Shown in pieces: positions 30,355-39,862 of a stretch of DNA of 64,000 nucleotides. The notes under the pieces are model-generated. The model saw nothing but the letters and a program-made list of their open reading frames with translations, had not been told where the DNA came from and did not search any database. The DNA lies in assembly GCA_047495785.1 (NCBI GenBank), contig JBLDXI010000029.1, positions 1,550,001-1,614,000 on the forward strand, written 5' to 3'. A program made the translations under genes and the position numbers. The number at the start of each line of letters is the position of its first letter. Within the stretch, counting starts at the first letter, position 1. The DNA comes from Lepidodermella squamata. Lineage: Eukaryota; Animalia; Gastrotricha.

Positions 30355-31751
30355 TAAAGGACAAGGGGCGTTAACGCACAGGAATCGGCCCAAAGTAGGG
30401 CGATAAGATCGCATGCGGCAAAATATTCAGTTTTTGGCTGGAAAAAATCTAGAAAATAGTCCGCGAGCTGCAGTTTACGAATTAGGGCATGTCATCTTGA
30501 GCAGAGGAGGGCAAATGGGAGAAAAAAATTGCTGAAGATGACGAAAAATTCAAAAACCGTCCCCAAACGCCAAAAATGCGACTTTTGACGCGTCAAAATA
30601 AATACAAGACAAATTAGCGTACCGGTAAGACTTGGCTGGTTCAAAGAAGGCGTCGAGGAGAACCCATAGGCCAAAAATGGCCGGTACGGAAATTTGTCTC
30701 TAGACAGGAGAGCAACTGACATCACTGCAGAAAAGTAAACGGCCGGCTCACCCTCCATTTCGATTTTAAATTAGATAAAAAAACTTTAATGCACTTTACA
30801 AAATAATACTTAATTTTGCTGAATCTGATTTTCAAAATTAAATTAAATTCATGTGAAGGTATAAATGGCGCATTTTTTCTCAGTCTAGTTTTAACTTCAA
30901 GTTTGTCGCAACGAAAACCATCGCTTTTTGCTGCGCCAAGTTGTCAAATAGTTGCATCTTTACACGCTAACAGATAATTCTGAGAAGCTTTTACGCGATA
31001 GTGGCAATTGACAAATAGATTCATAATGAATAGCTCTAAAGGTTGTGTGCGAAAAGAGCAAGCGAAATAAGAGCAATGATATAAGAGCAATGACATGAGA
31101 GCAAAACGAAATAAGAGCAACGAGATATGAGCAGCGAAATAAGAGCAGAACGACATAAGAGCAATTTAATGTAAGAGCAATATTGTTATTTCTATTCGCT
31201 ATATAAATGCTATTCTTTTACGCGGCCATTTTTTCTGTCAAGCTTCCGTCCCACAACAATAAGTTCGCACGCGCCCAATCAGTTTTTTCTTCGAAGAATT
31301 GGCAACGAAACCCGCTTTTTTGGTTGGCTTGATTGGTTCGCTTTGGGGCTGCTAATGAAAAATGATGAGCAACATCGCGTGCTTGACGCCATTTTTTGCC
31401 ATATCAATGTACCAAAAAATTGCTCTTTTTATTGCATTGCTCTTATCTCGTTATGCTCTTATTTCGTTTGCTCTCATATCGCTGCTCTTTTTTCGCTTGC
31501 TCTTTATTCGCTGCGCTTTTTTCGCTTGCTCTTAAGTCATACATTCACAGTGTAAATCCAATATAATATAATTGCTCTTATGTCATCTTGCTCTTATCTC
31601 GTTGCTCTTATTTCGTTTTGCTCTCATGTCATTGCTCATATATCATTGCTCTTATTTCGCTTGCTCTTTTCGCACACAACCAAATGGTGGTATTTTTTTT
31701 ATTTCATTATCTTTTGGGCCGATTTTCCATCTTAACGCCCCTTGTCCTTTA
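30355..31751. mobile_element. Non-autonomous TIR element (Kolobok-like AGG...CCT termini), hosting a nested element
   Basis: taaaggacaaggggcgttaa at 30355 and ttaacgccccttgtccttta ending 31751, extended by aatcggcccaaa / tttgggccgatt. A TTAA target is only partly preserved (gtaa / ttat), so the superfamily is tentative. Confidence 0.7.
31041..31681. mobile_element. Fold-back-type MITE with about 125-bp TIRs built from about 15-bp subrepeats
   Basis: ggttgtgtgcgaaaagagcaagcgaaataagagcaatg... mirrored by ...cattgctcttatttcgcttgctcttttcgcacacaacc. A third subrepeat tract lies at about 31420-31535. Confidence 0.88.
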
Positions 31752-32033: not shown

Positions 32034-32267
32034 TGTTGTATTCAAAGGCAGTCGGTTTTCAATCCAGAATTTTATTCGTAATAAAGATCCCCTATCAGTA
32101 CACATTAATTGCTTAAAATCATCAATTCACAACAAATAATATCGACAGAAATAAAATCATGAAATGACGACGACGATGACGATGGCTACTGCTGCCATGT
32201 GGTGAGTGCGAGTAGCGACCACGTGGTTGTCTAAATGACCTAGTTGACGACATTGCACTCCACAACA
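32034..32267 (-). repeat. 3' LTR
   Basis: Direct repeat of 39610-39843; I see 3 substitutions in 234 bp. Confidence 0.96.
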
Positions 32268-32298
32268 CCTCCCCACCAGTCTTGAAAAGACGAGACAC

Positions 32299-32469
32299 TC
32301 AATTTCCATCCACACGTAAGCGCGGGCTTCTTCGTAAGCCAGTTGACATCTCAGGTACAGTCGGCACAGGAGGTTCAGAAATATCGCCACTCCTAGGACA
32401 TAACTGATCAACATGACGTTTCCAGATTAGTCCATTTGCAATAACTCGAACTTCATAACGACGTGGACC
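32299..32469 (-). pseudogene. Displaced C-terminal tail of pol
   Basis: Removing 32470-35666 plus one TSD copy restores the frame ...ERVCGPR|RYEVRVIANGLIWKRHVDQLCPR...LRRSPRLRVDGN*. Confidence 0.9.
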
Positions 32470-35400
32470 CATAGAGCGAAGTAGGACCGCGGAACTGAAA
32501 GGGATAAGGAAAATCGACATAAAGGAAGCATTTATTTATTGATTTAAGAGCTTAAGTCTGCTCACAACAATGTTAATCGGGCAATCCACTCATAGCCGGC
32601 TGAAAAATCAGAGTCAAATTCAGTCCGGTTCAAATTCCATTTGTCCATTTTGATATGATAATACAAAACAACAACAAAATTGGCTCCACATTAACGTTAA
32701 AATTTTTGAGCTTCTTCGAAAGTTCAGATTCTCGTTGAGTCACAGGCATAGATTCATTCCAGTTGGATATCGTTCATTCGTTAGAGGGATTCGGATTTTA
32801 GGATTACACCAAACCCACCACCAAATAAATGAGGATCAATTATCAGAATCATGAGAATCAATAAATAGGTACAGCTACTTTACATTTTATGACCCCACTC
32901 TTATTGGGGACAGTATTCGCCACGCTATCTAGGTGAGATTGGTAACATGGTTTGGAAGTATTTCCTCGCAGGTGGTGCTAGACATAGTGTTGATCAAAGT
33001 TTCTGTTAACGCTCCAAGTGCCCGGAATTTTTCGTAATATCCCTTGTATGTTTTCAGGAGGTCGAAAAATCTTAGAAACCGTGCGTCGAAAGCTAGCTCA
33101 GAACTGTGCGAACAATTAGAGAATAGAAAAGAGGGCGACTAGGGATCACGAGATGGGAGGACTTCCTGAATCAAAATGTTCACACAGTATACCTCGTTTT
33201 ATTCATTCAACGCTGATCATTAATCTGCTGACTATCAACAGCCTCGAGAATGAATGTTTACGATTTTATTCCCTTCATCCAAAATTTACTATCAATTTCT
33301 CGACTAAACTGCAAGCTGCTCCTCTTGTCCGATTCACTCCTCGACCTTAGCACAGGTGTACTCGTATCGGTGGTTGCCGCCAGGACCGCGCTTCAGTTGG
33401 AACTGTTGCAGCAACCTGCCGTCGGGACAGGTCGGGCGGTAGTTGGCGAGAGCAAACGTTTTGCCCTTGTGGTCGATTTCATCAGTCACATGGTTGGTAG
33501 TGGCGACCTTACCTGTGACCTGTAAACACATTTTATTAAAACAGTAGCAGTTTGAATTCTGAAATTCGCACCGAGCAGCAAGTGTAGTAGTAGGTAATTG
33601 AACCTTCGGCAATTGTGAGACGGTCGGTAACTAGGACAAATCGGTTCAGGACTTCGTTAGCTTTGCATATGACAGCTTGCCTGTCCAGAAAGTTGGTGTC
33701 GCCGTAGTAGCCAGGGGTCCAAGCGTTCTGGATTTCGCGGCACACTGGCACCATGGGGGCAGCGCAACACGTGTACGCGTACTGGACGGTGGTTGCGCTA
33801 GGCCTGGTCAGTCCGAAGGAAGTGATATAGTTCCTCTCGGGACATTGCACGGTCTGCAAATTGAGCTGGTACGTTTTGCCATCAGGGTCATCGGCCAGTC
33901 TGGTTTTCAGGGTGGCATTAGAGCACTTCTCGTACCACTTCGGAGCTACATAGAAGCAATATTTTTCAATTTAAACCTGTCTTGTGCGGATTGCAACTCA
34001 CGCAGATTAATTTTAGCGCATGTGTATTCAAAGCGCACCATACCCTGGTCTACATCGCGTTGCAGGTGCCACCTCTGCATGAGCTCACCGTCCGCGCAGG
34101 CGAGATTGTGGCGGTCTAAGGTCGTCGTTTTGTTACTTTCCTTGTCGTAATCGGTTGTTAGCGCCCTGGGAATAACATCGAATTCGCCTTCAATCTGGAA
34201 ATGAAAAATAAACATGTGAGATGGTGAGATGGCGCCTGATAATCTGAACGTTTCCTGGACTCTTAGGCCTTGGCCATCAGAAACCTCCCCCAAAGTGGGG
34301 GATCTCACCACACGCTTGTTTCAGTCGAACCTCACGAGCTCTTAGGTAAATTTGGTACACGATCTCGATACTAACCTGGCAGCATGCGTAGTTGAATCTG
34401 ATCTGACTCCACAATGCGGTCAGGTGGAAGCCTTTCAGAAACTCATTCGCGTTGCACTTGATATCCTGTTTTTCGAGGGAGACAGCAGCAAAGCCATTAC
34501 CATCCGTCAGGTCATTCGTAACCTGTCTGCACTTTCCGACAGACGGCGCCTTGCAGCACTTGTATTCATACTGGGCAGACGAAGCAGTCGCATTCGGAGT
34601 GAATTTGAGCTTCCACGAGGTCAAGTAGCTGCCGTCGGGGCAGTAGACATACCGATAATTGAGATCGTACAGCATGCCGTCGGTATTGAACGCGTCGGTC
34701 GTGCTCACTCCAGTCGAGCATTCGACGGTCTTCGCAGGGCTGACAGTTGTTTCTGAAAAGACGAAATCGACGTGAGCCTAGGAAGGATTAGAGAGACGGT
34801 AACTTACGACTAAATGCCTAATGTCGCCGCGATAACAGCCAGTCTGAAAGCCATAGCCAAGGTTTCAATTGACAATTTTAATTAAAACGAAAAGCAGATG
34901 AATGACTGGATGAAACTTTGGATGATCGAGCAGCTTGAGGATGTTTATGGACAGTTTTATTTTTAACTCGTCGACAACTGAGCATACATTCTATCCGAAA
35001 TTAGCTTGGTTGTGGGGGACGATGCGAAGCAATTGTTTGCTAGCACCAGTGGTAAAATAATAATGATAATTTTTAAATATTATTCTCGAACATCCCATAG
35101 CAAATAATTTTCTTATTATTATTATTAGGCATTAATGTTAAGTCGCCCACTGCTAGTGCGATTAGGCAGCTGGCCTGAGAGTTGTTCTAAGCTTTTGAGT
35201 GCAAAACGCTGCAATTTTTGTTTTGACCTCATTCATCGACAAACAGCCTCCATTCCCTCCTGAGCCTAGCCATGATCGCCGAGGTAGTTAGTGTAGCTGA
35301 AATCTTCATGATCCTGCTCGATAAGCTTGTTTGCAAATTGGCATGACTGTGGTGCTAAGCATCCCATATGCGATTAAGTCACCATTTAACCACTCAATTG

Positions 35401-35666
35401 ATTAGTGACAAAGCGCCGGTTATGGGCGGTCATGGACGACCAAGCGCCAGCAAGGGAAATGGCGAAATCGAAGACAAGATGGACCCGGCACAACTATGAA
35501 CATTTCTTGATCCATAGTGCGAACCATAGACCATAGAGCGAAGTAGAACCGCGGAACAAAAATCGGCATAAGGGTCCCACCTTTGGTCTTTGTCTGAGCT
35601 CACCTTGCGGACCGATGGAACTGGCAGGGATAATCCCTACCATCCCTAGCGTTACTTCGCTCTATG
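32470..35666. mobile_element. Non-autonomous TIR DNA transposon (P- or hAT-type) carrying host-like cargo, nested in pol
   Basis: 14-bp TIRs catagagcgaagta / tacttcgctctatg. Perfect 8-bp TSD cgtggacc (32462-32469 and 35667-35674). No transposase recognisable. A second copy of the left end starts at 35532. Confidence 0.93.
33334..34854 (-). CDS. Five-exon gene for a putative secreted protein with six Cys-rich repeats of about 55 aa (exon 1 appears frameshifted)
   Basis: Exons 34854-34808, 34752-34376, 34194-34002, 33945-33572 and 33519-33334 with GT-AG introns. Exons 2-5 splice in frame. Repeats end YEYKCC, FNYACC, FEYTCA, YAYTCC, YYYTCC, YEYTCA. Exon 1 (MAFRLAVIAATL...) hits TAG at 34810-34812. 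Confidence 0.8.
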
Positions 35667-38600
35667 CGTGGACCACATACGCGTTCAACAATCGCCGCTG
35701 CCCATTTGGGATCGCTATTAGATAAACGACCACCCAGAACACGAGCGTAGACTTCGTCACCAACCGAAAACTTGGTCGCAATAACGTCGGTTTCCGTTCG
35801 AGCAGTTTGTCGCTTTTGATCGCTTAGAATCGGATTCAAAACCAGAGTGTCGATCTTAGCGCGAATTTGACGACCGTTCAACAATTCACTAGGCGAATAA
35901 CCATTAGCCAACGGGGTACGTCGGTAAATCATCAGAAATTCGTTTAGCGCAGCAGTTTTCGACAGCGTAGACTTTTTCATGGAAGCTTTGAAGGTTTCCA
36001 CAAAACGCTCCGCCAAGCCATTGGTTTCAGGTTTGTAAGGGGCACCGGTTAAATGAATTATACCTCGATCTTGGCAACCTCGCTGAAACTCATCAGAAAG
36101 AAACATTGGAAAATTATCGGAAACAAGAACTTGCGGATAACCGAAATGAGCAAAATCTTGGTCTAACAATTCCAAGGTCGTTTTAGCCGTCAACGATTTC
36201 GTTGGATGAATGCAAGGGTAGCGAGAAGTAGAATCAACCAGAATTAACCAGTTTGAATCCAGAAAATTTATCGCATGATCAACATGAACTCGAGTCCAGG
36301 GCTTCTCAGGAATTGACCAAGGGTGAACGGGTGCTTTGATCGGATTGTTTTGATGTTCATTGCAGTTGGAGCAAGTTTTAGCCAGGTTAGTTATCGCATC
36401 ATCAATACCCGGCCAGTAGACAGCCGTTCGAGCCAGTTGCTTCATGCGTTGGATTCCAAAGTGACTCAGATGAATAACTTTGAGCACTTCGTCGCGTAAC
36501 TTTTTAGGAACCAACAACCTGTTGCCATAAAATACACACGGACCGTTAACGGACAAATAAGAGGACAGTTTTTTGAGGTCTCGGAGTTCTTGTTCTTCGA
36601 TTTTATCTGGCCACCCATTTCGAATGAACATCGCTGCTTTTGATACCACTGTATCGCGAACAGATTCTCGAATCACAGAGTTTGACTCAGCAGTAGATTG
36701 ATAGCCAATTGTTTTGATTGTCAGGACCATATCAACATCTTCACCACTTTCCTCCCCATCAAACTTCGGATCTTCACCGACTGGCAAGCGACTGAGTGCA
36801 TCGGCATTACCATGATCTTCTGTTCGACGGAACTCGATTTCGTAATCGTATTGTTGCAGCATCCAACACCATCTAGCCAGTCGATTTGCAGCCATTTGCG
36901 GCACGCCTTTCTTCGGATGAAAAAGTGACAACAGCGGTTTATGATCAGTGACCACTGAAAAATGTCGACCAAATACAAAATTATGAAACTTTTTCAACCC
37001 AAAAATTATTGCCAAAGCTTCCTTTTCGATTTGACTGTAATTGCGTTGGGCTGATGTCAATGTTTTCGAAGAATTCGCAATTGGACGATCGGAACCATCC
37101 GGAAATCGGTGAAACAAAACTGCACCAATACCAACCTGAGACGCATCGACTGCTATACCCACTGGCTTTTTCGGGTCAAAGTGAACCAAAACTTCGTCTG
37201 ACGCCAATAGACGCTTCACCTCGTCGAACGCAGTTTGCTGCTTATCGCCCCAATGCCATTGTTCACCTTGTTTGGTCAATTTATACAAAGGTTCTAGCAC
37301 AGTGGATAAGTTCGGGGGCAAAAATTTCGCGTAAAACTGAACTTGACCCAGAAAAGAACGTAAAGTTGGGACATCAACAGGTGGAGCCATTTTTAAAACA
37401 GCTTCAACTTTCAAACCTTTACCCAGACCTTCAGCCGACAGAAGATGTCCTAAGCAGGGCATAACCGGAACCGCAAAATCGAATTTTTCCAAGCGGCCAC
37501 GGAGACCTACTTCCGTCAATCGTTTGAGCGCTCCACGATAATTCGACAAATGATCTGCAGCATCTTTGCCAGTGACAATCACATTATCGAGAAAACAGGC
37601 AACGCCCGGAAGGTCGGACGTAATAGTTTCCATGATTCGCTGAAAATACCCGGGAGCTGACTTGATTCCGAAGGGTAAACGTTTCTGAAGTAGCGGACCT
37701 TGATGTGTGCTGAGAGCAAGTCGTCGTTGCGAAATCGGACCCAGTTTGATTTGGTTGTACGCGTCAGCCAGATCGATTTGACTGTACATGTAACCACCTT
37801 GAAGTTTCCGCATAATATCTTCCGGTAATGGTAACGGATGACGGTGAGGTTCGATTTGATCGTTCAATGACGCTGAATAATCGCCACAAACTCGCAGCTT
37901 TCGGGTAGTTTGACCTGGTAACAACGGTTTGATGATGGGTACGACCGGAGTGCCACATTCATTGAACGAAGTTCTTTCCCAGACACCGCGTTTAATACCA
38001 GCTTCGTAAGCGTTATTCAGGTCCTCAGTCAGAGCCAATGGTACTGGTCTTGGGCGACAAAACAAAGGTGTAAAATTGTCAACAAATTTCACTTCGAGTT
38101 CAAAATTTTTCAATTCACCCAGTTCCGGACTGAAGAATTCAGGGAATTCATCGCAAACTTTCCTAACCTGCTCCTGCAATTCAACATCGGGTTTGAGATG
38201 CTCAAAGACCTTATTAACCGGGACTGGAACTATGCCCAGTTTTTGATCGACAGAAATGCGAAGAGGTTTCATACCGTCAATACCAACCAGGTTCAACTTG
38301 GGAACGGGCGTAACGTAGAAATCCAGAGTACACGGACCGATAGATGCCGTAGATACTGGCAATTGAGTTACCCCTAGAACATTCAATTGATGTTTTGAAG
38401 CACTTTCGAATTTGTAGTTTGCTGGCGACATCTTCGGTGAGCCCAAAATCGTCCAATAATCCTCTGAGATGAAATTGACGGGTGAACCGCAGTCAACCTC
38501 AAAGGTGAATATTTGATCGCCGATTCGAAGATCTTCGTAAACAACATCTTTTGATTCAGCAACTTTGTTGAGTGCGATTGACTTGTTTTGACGAAGCGTT

Positions 38601-39583
38601 ATGACTTTAACTGGTTTCGCATCGGAATTGGTCGATCGACAAGCTGCAGCTATATGTCCATGCTTGCCACATGAGTTACAATCGTAGTCACGGTAGTGGC
38701 AGTTTTTCCGTGGATGACCCGACTTGCCACAAGATTGACAAGACAATTGATTGGGCTGGTTAGTCGGTGGCTGCGACGACTGTTGGTTCGACTTGTGAAA
38801 ATTCTTTCGTTGAAATTTCGTATTATTGCCGAACTTCTTCGGTTTTGTCGATATTTGATAGACGGGTTGCGGCGGTGGTGCGACTGTTTCTTTTGCTACT
38901 TTGGCAGCTTCCTCAGTTTCGATAGCCACCTCGATTACTTTGGAGAAGGTAAGTTCGTCGTCTTTGATTTTGAAGATGGCACGAAGTACATTTTCGTTTT
39001 TAATTGAGCCGATAAATCGAGACTTCAACGCTTCGTCGAGGGGATCTTTTATGGATTTAAAATCACAGGTAGCAGCGTCGGCTCTGATTCGACTGACTAA
39101 CTGCTGGATTGACTCCTTCGTTTTCCGACCCATGTTGCTCCAGAACTTGTGACGTTCACGCACTACGAACTTTTTCGGATCGTATTAAGTGGCCATGAAC
39201 GTGCAGATCTCTTCGTATTTGAGAGCGTTTAGTTCTTTGTCATGTTCTTGCTTGGCGTGAAGTTGTAGCTCTTTGTACAAGACGTCCGTTTGACAAGCCA
39301 AGAAGTAAGCGGCCTTGGTGTTGGTTTTACCGTGGGCACGTGCGTATGTATCAAACCGTCCTTTGTAGTCTTCCCACAGTTCGGCCTGTGGGTTGAAACC
39401 TGGGAACTCACGAGTCGCCTTTGATTCATTGTCGGCAATTAGTTTTTGAATTGCTTCGCTGTGTTCCTTGAGCGCCGTTTGACTCGAGACACTTAACGAG
39501 ACTAGTTGTTGCAGTAATTGAGCCAATGTAGGTTCGCCTGCGGTGATAGCCGGTGTCGCAGCTGTTGATGCTGGATCAGACAT
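35667..39583 (-). pseudogene. gag-pol: gag-pol polyprotein, main part; in-frame TAA at 39185-39187 and RT motif FLDN
   Basis: ORFs 39185-39583 and 35600-39163 are in one frame, separated by a single TAA. Two CCHC knuckles, VDCGS protease, RLPFGIKSAPGYFQ, NYSQIEKEALA, TDHKPL, GHPGI-like SHFGI zinc finger, VSDN and SNG-like TNGLAERFV integrase motifs. Confidence 0.93.
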
Positions 39584-39609: not shown

Positions 39610-39843
39610 TGTTGTATTCAAAGGCAGTCGGTTTTCAATCCAGAATTTTATTCGCAATAAAGATCCCCTATCAGTACACATTAATTGCTTGAAATCATCA
39701 ATTCACAACAAATAATATCGACAGAAATAAAATCATGAAATGACGACGACGATGACGATGGCTACTGCTGCCACGTGGTGAGTGCGAGTAGCGACCACGT
39801 GGTTGTCTAAATGACCTAGTTGACGACATTGCACTCCACAACA
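39610..39843 (-). repeat. 5' LTR
   Basis: Direct repeat of 32034-32267; carries AATAAA on the minus strand. Confidence 0.96.
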
Positions 39844-39862
39844 CGGTCATACCGAGCTTTCT

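Follow-up and report, generated by a model that had tools for sequence, protein, structure and literature searches.

Pack-type transposons, in which terminal inverted repeats (TIRs) enclose sequence taken from host genes, are already known in animals: a survey of 100 genomes catalogued 370 Pack-TIRs, most of them present as a single copy and carrying gene fragments, and few multicopy families have been examined (Tan et al. 2021, PMC8277862). Template switching (FoSTeST) has been proposed for the multicopy animal Pack-TIRs (PMC8277862). Here, we describe a further example, and not a novel class, from the gastrotrich Lepidodermella squamata. It lies in a window of 64,000 nucleotides (GenBank assembly GCA_047495785.1, contig JBLDXI010000029.1, positions 1,550,001 to 1,614,000 of the forward strand); the window is this whole stretch, and positions given below without a contig name count from its first letter. 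The segment at 32470-35666 (3,197 bp) is bounded by TIRs and a target site duplication (TSD), has the ends of a genuine TIR family and holds a host-type gene in an interior without a transposase, the features by which Pack-TIRs are recognized. We consider it, at a probability of roughly 85%, to be a non-autonomous Pack-type or composite cut-and-paste transposon with the ends of a miniature inverted-repeat transposable element (MITE) family, carrying a complete gene of host type.

The closest analogue is Ssk-FB4 of Drosophila melanogaster, which carries a nearly whole gene, is found with distinct TSDs at several loci, and has TIRs of ~700 bp, TSDs of 9 to 10 bp that are typical of Mutator-like elements (MULEs), a surviving parent gene, Ssk, and signs of positive selection (PMC8277862). 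The L. squamata element differs in having 14-bp, MITE-derived TIRs, 8-bp TSDs and no surviving parent, and in the signature of purifying selection on its cargo. Plant Pack-MULEs carry mostly gene fragments, often chimeric, and seldom a whole functional gene. The Pack-MULEs and Pack-TYPE elements of plants (rice; PMC5861414, PMC8903248) are TIR bounded, lack a transposase, contain host gene sequence and have been amplified by transposition, all of which applies to the present element as well. The latter, however, carries a whole gene with promoter and introns, resides in an animal and makes hAT-like 8-bp TSDs. Pack-hAT-N8_XT and further multicopy Pack-TIRs, described from frogs and alligators, are animal elements as well, with hAT-type ends and with a few copies that repeated transposition produced (PMC8277862). 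The gastrotrich element differs from them in its arms, one being an entire MITE and the other a 55-bp stub. In the macrotransposition of maize Ac/Ds and in bacterial composite transposons, the outer ends of two copies mobilize the DNA between them. The element resembles these in that its right arm is a complete MITE able to act alone, as the loss of this unit from one copy (C30, see below) suggests; unlike them, its left copy is cut to 55 bp, which leaves a single usable pair of ends, and a composite origin is something that we infer.

The borders of the element are sharp. The 14-bp TIR is perfect, with CATAGAGCGAAGTA at 32470-32483 being the reverse complement of 35653-35666, and the element is flanked by a perfect 8-bp TSD, CGTGGACC, at 32462-32469 and again at 35667-35674. 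In the assembly (121 Mb, 151 contigs) we found six copies of the whole element, on contig C29 (the window), C54, C4, C66 (C66a and C66b) and C30. Four of them are complete, with identical 14-bp ends and distinct perfect 8-bp TSDs: CGTGGACC for C29, TTTTCGCC for C54, ATCTGACG for C4 and CTTCATTA for C66a. Because each complete copy has a different perfect TSD, the element has transposed repeatedly, and these are four independent insertions. The complete copies fall into two subfamilies, C29 and C54 (99.0% identical) and C4 and C66a (99.4% identical), with 96.8% identity between the pairs. C66b is a truncated segmental duplicate of C66a and shares its flank. Precisely the 135-bp terminal unit and a further 8 bp are missing from the C30 copy, which retains 7 of 8 TSD positions (ACCACATT/ACCACAAT); since at least 7 of 8 matches at a fixed place would arise by chance with a probability of only ~4e-4, C30 represents a fifth insertion whose end was later lost, possibly through excision of the terminal MITE alone.

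The window copy is inserted in a Ty3/Gypsy retrotransposon on the minus strand, whose long terminal repeats (LTRs) of 235 bp lie at 39610-39844 (5' LTR) and 32034-32268 (3' LTR), both on the minus strand, and differ at 3 of 235 positions (1.3%). The main part of the Gypsy pol gene (35675-39163, minus strand) encodes the reverse transcriptase (RT), RNase H and integrase domains in the order RVT_1 (449-566), RT_RNaseH (663-772), Integrase_H2C2 (885-939) and rve (972-1045), as matched in Pfam, and the insertion point lies in the pol tail, past the integrase core. The severed C-terminal tail (32299-32461, minus strand; within the open reading frame [ORF] at 32299-32520) is joined to the rest of pol in an empty copy of this Gypsy, and a scripted count of the open frame showed that 35675-39163 and 32299-32461 share one frame across a single TSD copy. 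The empty copy, on contig C15, is uninterrupted at the site over 346 bp at 99.7% identity and has one CGTGGACC. Because the DNA flanking the C15 Gypsy is unrelated to that of the window, this is a paralogous empty site and neither an allele nor a haplotig, and since so similar a paralog is empty at the site, the insertion postdates the integration of the Gypsy. The ages fit, with an LTR divergence of 1.3% and a divergence of 1.0% between the C29 and C54 elements. Assembled DNA contigs of a short-read run (X1) contain the empty joint from 32461 to 35667, with 8 shared letters, at a depth of 34 compared with ~70 in the flanks, a value that would tentatively fit two Gypsy copies, one of them empty and the other occupied.

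An earlier note, made from the letters of the window, had described a TIR-bounded 3,197-bp segment with a perfect 8-bp TSD in the pol tail of a Gypsy with near-identical LTRs, excision of which would restore the pol frame, and all of this agrees with the ends, the frame count and the C15 copy. Its proposals that a recently mobile Pack-type element was involved and that the insertion came after retrotransposition are borne out by the C54, C4 and C66a copies, which share the ends and differ in TSD, and by the near-identical C15 Gypsy without the element; the empty Gypsy copy that it asked for is thus at hand, so not all family members carry the segment. The C15 Gypsy (C15:2919229-2922606, locus 2219-2993) has itself received a 775-bp insertion in its LTR, a foldback-type MITE with long, near-perfect terminal inverted repeats (~80 nt shown per end), and its pol is broken by a second insertion of ~772 bp.

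The ends of the element are those of a high-copy MITE family of ~135 to 148 bp with the ends CATAGAG/CAGAGAGCGAAGTA. MITE copies elsewhere carry 8-bp TSDs (e.g., CCTTCACC, AATTGAAC, AATCCTTA and ACTCGGGG); over the Pack and MITE insertions, eight TSDs are perfect and one matches at 7 of 8 positions. With up to one mismatch allowed, the genome contains 259 matches to the end word and 24 to a reversed control; because of this excess and of the three further complete copies with different TSDs, the match of the ends is not a matter of chance. Exact matches number 123 for CAGAGAGCGAAGTA (1 for the control) and 68 for CATAGAG, so that about two thirds of the exact family ends are CAGAGAGCGAAGTA; both ends of the window copy begin with CATAG, while family ends begin with CAGAG (123 exact) or CATAG (68 exact). 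The tip CAGAG is that of hAT elements of the hobo, Hermes and Tol2 type. As the 8-bp TSD, the short TIRs and the CAGAG tip point to hAT, we give this superfamily a somewhat better than even chance.

Transposase domains matched in the whole genome comprised 30 of hAT (PF05699), 97 of MULE (PF10551) and 6 of P type (PF12017). Candidates for an autonomous partner were considered and rejected: two hAT loci with long ORFs on C2, whose DNA has no family ends; an end pair 2.77 kb apart on C11, which has neither a TSD nor a transposase ORF; and end matches spaced 4,312 bp apart on C63, a tandem repeat that holds an ordinary MITE. Kilobase-spaced end pairs on C33, C10 and C50 likewise yielded nothing. 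At the C63 locus (C63:195500-204700), the 4,312-bp unit is repeated in tandem at least four times with one MITE each, and because every unit has a MITE with the same TSD (AATCCTTA), this MITE was multiplied passively, along with its tandem unit. On C46 (C46:60000-61100), a right family end at locus positions 511-524 and a left family end at 562-575, together spanning 511-575, face each other across 37 bp, which could be due to MITEs inserted side by side or one within another, or to a rearrangement. Elsewhere on C46 (546802-550046) and on C66 (466188-473494), PF12017 matches with open frames of 413 to 419 amino acids (aa) stand near matches to the hAT dimerization domain, 3 to 7 kb apart and on the same strand, and the pair on C66 has C66a on one side and C66b on the other.

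The interior of the element is a mosaic. Its left arm (32470-32525, plus strand) comprises the 14-bp TIR and MITE positions 1-55, with 96% identity to MITE positions 1-53/55. It is followed by the 3' end of a long interspersed nuclear element (LINE), truncated at its 5' side and ending in a tail of the (AAATA)n type (32526-32704, minus strand). This 3' end recurs in the genome with variable 5' ends, in pieces of up to ~1.29 kb with an RT ORF containing a YADD motif, and since the LINE fragment recurs in every one of the six element copies, it is older than the spread of the family. The LINE relatives (L048 at C9:3016196-3019382, locus 397-1688, and L050-L055) form a young family with copies 96 to 99% identical, a common form of ~1.29 kb, an ORF of 349 aa covering the RT C terminus and an (AAATA)n tail; several copies begin at one shared 5' point, suggesting a discrete truncated subfamily. 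The 3' flank and untranslated region of the cargo gene (32705-33333, minus strand) were delimited from the alignment of the four complete copies. Within them, the window copy alone is missing ~112 bp at 32817/32818, where it reads CCACC and where the five other copies have a segment of about 115 bp. The cause may be a plain deletion or the departure of a small element, with CCACC as its footprint. Beyond the cargo gene (33334-34854) and its 5' flank with the promoter region (34855-35531, minus strand), the right arm (35532-35666, plus strand) is a whole MITE unit (MITE positions 1-26 and 41-148), seen also as MITE-sized joints in DNA contigs, whose outer end serves as the right end of the element. 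A third copy of the left end is accordingly found at 35532, and the last 135 bp amount to a complete MITE with both of its own ends. Apart from the two arms, no MITE-derived piece and no remnant of the right half of the left MITE were found inside the element. Within the element, the ORF list contains no transposase-like ORF, as the earlier note had also found, and, the cargo gene aside, no ORF of note.

The cargo gene, on the minus strand, has five exons (34854-34808, 34752-34376, 34194-34002, 33945-33572 and 33519-33334) separated by four GT-AG introns of 52 to 181 bp, a model supported by spliced, RNA-like contigs. In C54, C4, C66a and C30 it is intact, encoding 393 aa with a signal peptide, a full frame and all eight splice sites. 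The window copy has a 5-bp deletion after 34812, which shifts the frame in exon 1 and leads to a stop at codon 15, and is, by its reading frame, a pseudogene; C66b, too, is broken, by a 2-bp deletion and by a stop at codon 383. Relatives with the same exon layout form tandem arrays on C18, C106, C54 and elsewhere, with 66 to 76% DNA identity and 52 to 73% amino acid identity to the cargo. Upstream of the ATG, the array paralogs share only the proximal ~230 bp, and the full 5' flank, of about 680 bp, was found in the assembly in no further copy beyond the six elements. Judged from this comparison, the cargo belongs to a host gene family from which it has diverged, and it was taken with its own promoter region; because the introns and about 680 bp of 5' flank are retained, it was captured at the DNA level. 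The earlier note had argued for such a capture of a five-exon gene from the retained introns, and here the flank adds to its case; its idea of a duplicated cellular gene is supported by paralogs that share the exon structure, with the caveat that a parental locus was not found in the assembly. None of the checks that it had suggested spoke against its reading. It had overlooked the third left-end copy at 35532, the LINE at 32526-32704 and the frameshift in the window cargo.

As to the protein, six Cys-rich repeats of ~60 aa each end in the pattern aromatic-x-aromatic-x-C(C). Pfam offers no family for it, and the window exons and 12 family members gave no match to DERM (PF14704) even at E ≤ 10. 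Based on language-model features, however, the clusters nearest to a 124-aa double repeat carry the dermatopontin domain (0.95, 214/256), and an AlphaFold (AF2) model, with a predicted local distance difference test score (pLDDT) of 75.6, reaches template modeling (TM) scores of 0.55 to 0.64 to DERM-containing Atlas clusters; it also matches hypothetical proteins of giant viruses. No match was found in the PDB, either by sequence or by fold, and the cluster names of the relatives read only "hypothetical protein." A profile search retrieved 1,375 proteins (E ≤ 0.001), some of which also have PAN, lectin or trefoil domains, and the nearest public full-length relatives are 28 to 30% identical, one of them being intronless and on a metagenomic contig. 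In a dermatopontin, the repeat pattern C-P-x-G ... aromatic-x-aromatic-x-C would be expected along with the fold. The protein is probably dermatopontin-like in fold; from the resemblance of the predicted fold, our reading is that of a secreted, extracellular dermatopontin-like repeat protein, possibly with a role in binding or in the matrix.

The coding sequence of the cargo is constrained. Between the subfamilies, the proportion of synonymous differences (pS) is 0.042 to 0.045 and that of nonsynonymous differences (pN) 0.007 to 0.009, giving a pairwise dN/dS of 0.14 to 0.21, and the exons diverge by 1.5%, compared with 4.5 to 5% for the nongenic part of the element. Over the six copies, 17 variable sites are synonymous and 13 nonsynonymous, where 77% nonsynonymous would be expected neutrally (binomial P = 5e-5). 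Among copy-specific, terminal-branch changes, tallied by hand, 8 are synonymous and 7 nonsynonymous, against a neutral expectation of ~1:3.4. On these counts, the cargo shows the signature of purifying selection. Contigs of a second run (X2), a 2015 data set guessed to be RNA, have a k-mer depth of 78 to 89 on the exons, 0 in the intron 2 bin and at 32776-33251 and 34918-35155, and 2 to 13 over the distal 5' flank and the terminal MITE. Introns 1, 2 and 4 are absent from them, cut at precisely the splice sites predicted, while no joint listed covers intron 3; they have an intact exon 1 (GTCGT present), and their diagnostic sites match a C54-type copy. Positions at which the copies can be told apart are 33504, 33746, 33808, 34417 and 34588. 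With X2 presumed to be RNA, at least one intact cargo copy is transcribed and correctly spliced. At 35156-35750, several of the X2 contigs of low depth (3 to 13) switch strand (35207/35321 to 35522/35608); no significant inverted repeat was found in the 5' flank to explain the switching, which may be due to bidirectional low-level transcription or to an assembly artifact.

These observations can be brought together in the following mechanism. A transposase acting in trans, serving the MITE family and most likely of hAT type, would recognize the 14-bp terminal repeats and probably also subterminal AGGGAT motifs, and the whole 3.2-kb unit would be cut out and pasted elsewhere, creating the 8-bp duplication. 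For cut-and-paste elements, it is established that copies are gained through donor repair or through moves timed to replication. Repair of the donor site from the sister or homologue, or transposition ahead of the replication fork, would in this way leave an extra copy, and every such gain would add a dispersed working copy of the gene. The window copy entered the pol tail of a young Gypsy and then decayed through the 5-bp frameshift and the loss of ~112 bp.

Several points weigh against this reading, in whole or in part: (i) outside the six copies, no donor or parental locus was found in the assembly search, the nearest relatives having 66 to 76% DNA identity, although its absence is expected, since a cut-and-paste element leaves its donor site; (ii) no short-read contig listed bridges either junction of the window copy with at least 31 letters on both sides, as short-read contigs break at the high-copy MITE ends, and it is the assembly and the pattern seen across the family that support the window copy itself; (iii) the CATAG tip of the window copy deviates from the YARNG of hAT; (iv) the hAT target preference nTnnnnAn is absent from the nine TSDs; (v) the genome-wide domain search gave no transposase domain within plausible element length of the end matches listed; and (vi) the identification of X2 as RNA is a guess. 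As a rival to transposon insertion, segmental duplication or chimeric assembly would accord with the unbridged junctions and with C66a and C66b, whose shared flank is indeed a segmental duplication; this is very improbable in view of the four complete copies, each in its own flank and with its own perfect 8-bp TSD exactly at the TIR tips, the precise empty site in the C15 Gypsy and the same behavior of ends and TSDs in the MITE family. Given a transposon, its first assembly can be accounted for in more than one way. If two MITEs flanked a resident member of the gene family and their outer ends came to be used together, the right arm should comprise an entire MITE, its two ends included, rather than a right half, as is seen at 35532-35666; the left MITE would have lost everything past position 55, perhaps at the LINE insertion, and MITE positions 1-55 do run directly into the LINE tail. 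The exact loss of the terminal MITE plus 8 bp from C30, with 7/8 of the TSD kept, also fits a terminal MITE that is a separate unit, and the missing donor locus is what cut-and-paste predicts. On the other side, the element holds no remnant of the right half of the left MITE, neither a donor site nor its footprint was found, and the same layout could result if the template was switched while a gap was repaired or DNA was replicated (FoSTeST, PMC8277862). The asymmetry of the arms, a 55-bp stub on the left and a whole MITE on the right, fits both accounts alike; we give the composite account about even odds, and it concerns the origin step only.

The superfamily is likewise open to another assignment, as P elements and Mutator (MULE) elements can both make 8-bp TSDs. 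The earlier note had named P or hAT on account of these TSDs, which do fit, while an autonomous hAT, P or MULE partner was not found near the end matches listed. For P, and for some MULEs, the TSD length is suitable; the CATAG tip of the window copy is nearer to the CATG of P than to the YARNG of hAT, and P-type transposase domains as well as the 97 MULE domains exist in the genome. Against this stand the exact family ends, about two thirds of which are CAGAGAGCGAAGTA (123 versus 68 for CATAGAG) with the CAGAG known from hAT, the TIRs of only 14 bp, unlike those of typical MULEs, and the observation that no P or MULE domain match adjoins the end matches listed. Together, these superfamilies form a lesser possibility that we take seriously, P being unlikely and MULE slightly more so when each is taken singly. 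The cargo copies might be functionless passengers, with the low dN/dS inherited from a lost master gene or due to youth, and the transcripts no more than read-through noise. Two of six copies are broken already (the frameshift in C29; the 2-bp deletion and the stop at codon 383 in C66b), the counts are small (30 variable sites), evidence at the protein level is nil and X2 is not certified as RNA. Such inertness is nevertheless unlikely, given the copy-specific ratio of 8 synonymous to 7 nonsynonymous changes where ~1:3.4 is the neutral value, the four copies that hold the full 393-codon frame and all eight splice sites, and the precise splicing at three introns, with a depth of 78 to 89 that drops to 0 in the intron 2 bin and, in the flanks, at 32776-33251 and 34918-35155.

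In the neighborhood of the host Gypsy, just upstream of its LTR, the window contains a 93-nt inverted repeat (31041-31681) with 98% complementarity and 455 nt between the arms, which consist of tandem units of ~14 to 16 nt (AAGAGCAA...); it looks like a foldback-like element or a hairpin locus.

To conclude, plants offer ample records of genes duplicated by DNA transposons and animals only few; in L. squamata the whole chain is present in one genome: a MITE family, a gene-carrying derivative, four insertions, an empty site, selection and spliced transcripts. The case is a tractable one for asking how the chimera was formed, through composite ends or through template switching, and whether the cargo is beneficial to the host or a mere passenger. 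We tentatively raise the possibility, which we hold to be the less probable one, that the cargo gene now exists only as transposon cargo, with no fixed place on a chromosome, and is kept intact by selection in several copies of the element, while a MITE-type transposon, still mobilized, determines its dosage and genomic position. If this is true, the missing terminal MITE of the C30 copy would bear witness to transposase action in the recent past, and L. squamata would be an animal in which the dispersal of a host-type gene family by cut-and-paste transposition could be followed in nature. The element supports the view that cut-and-paste elements can spread working genes in animals.

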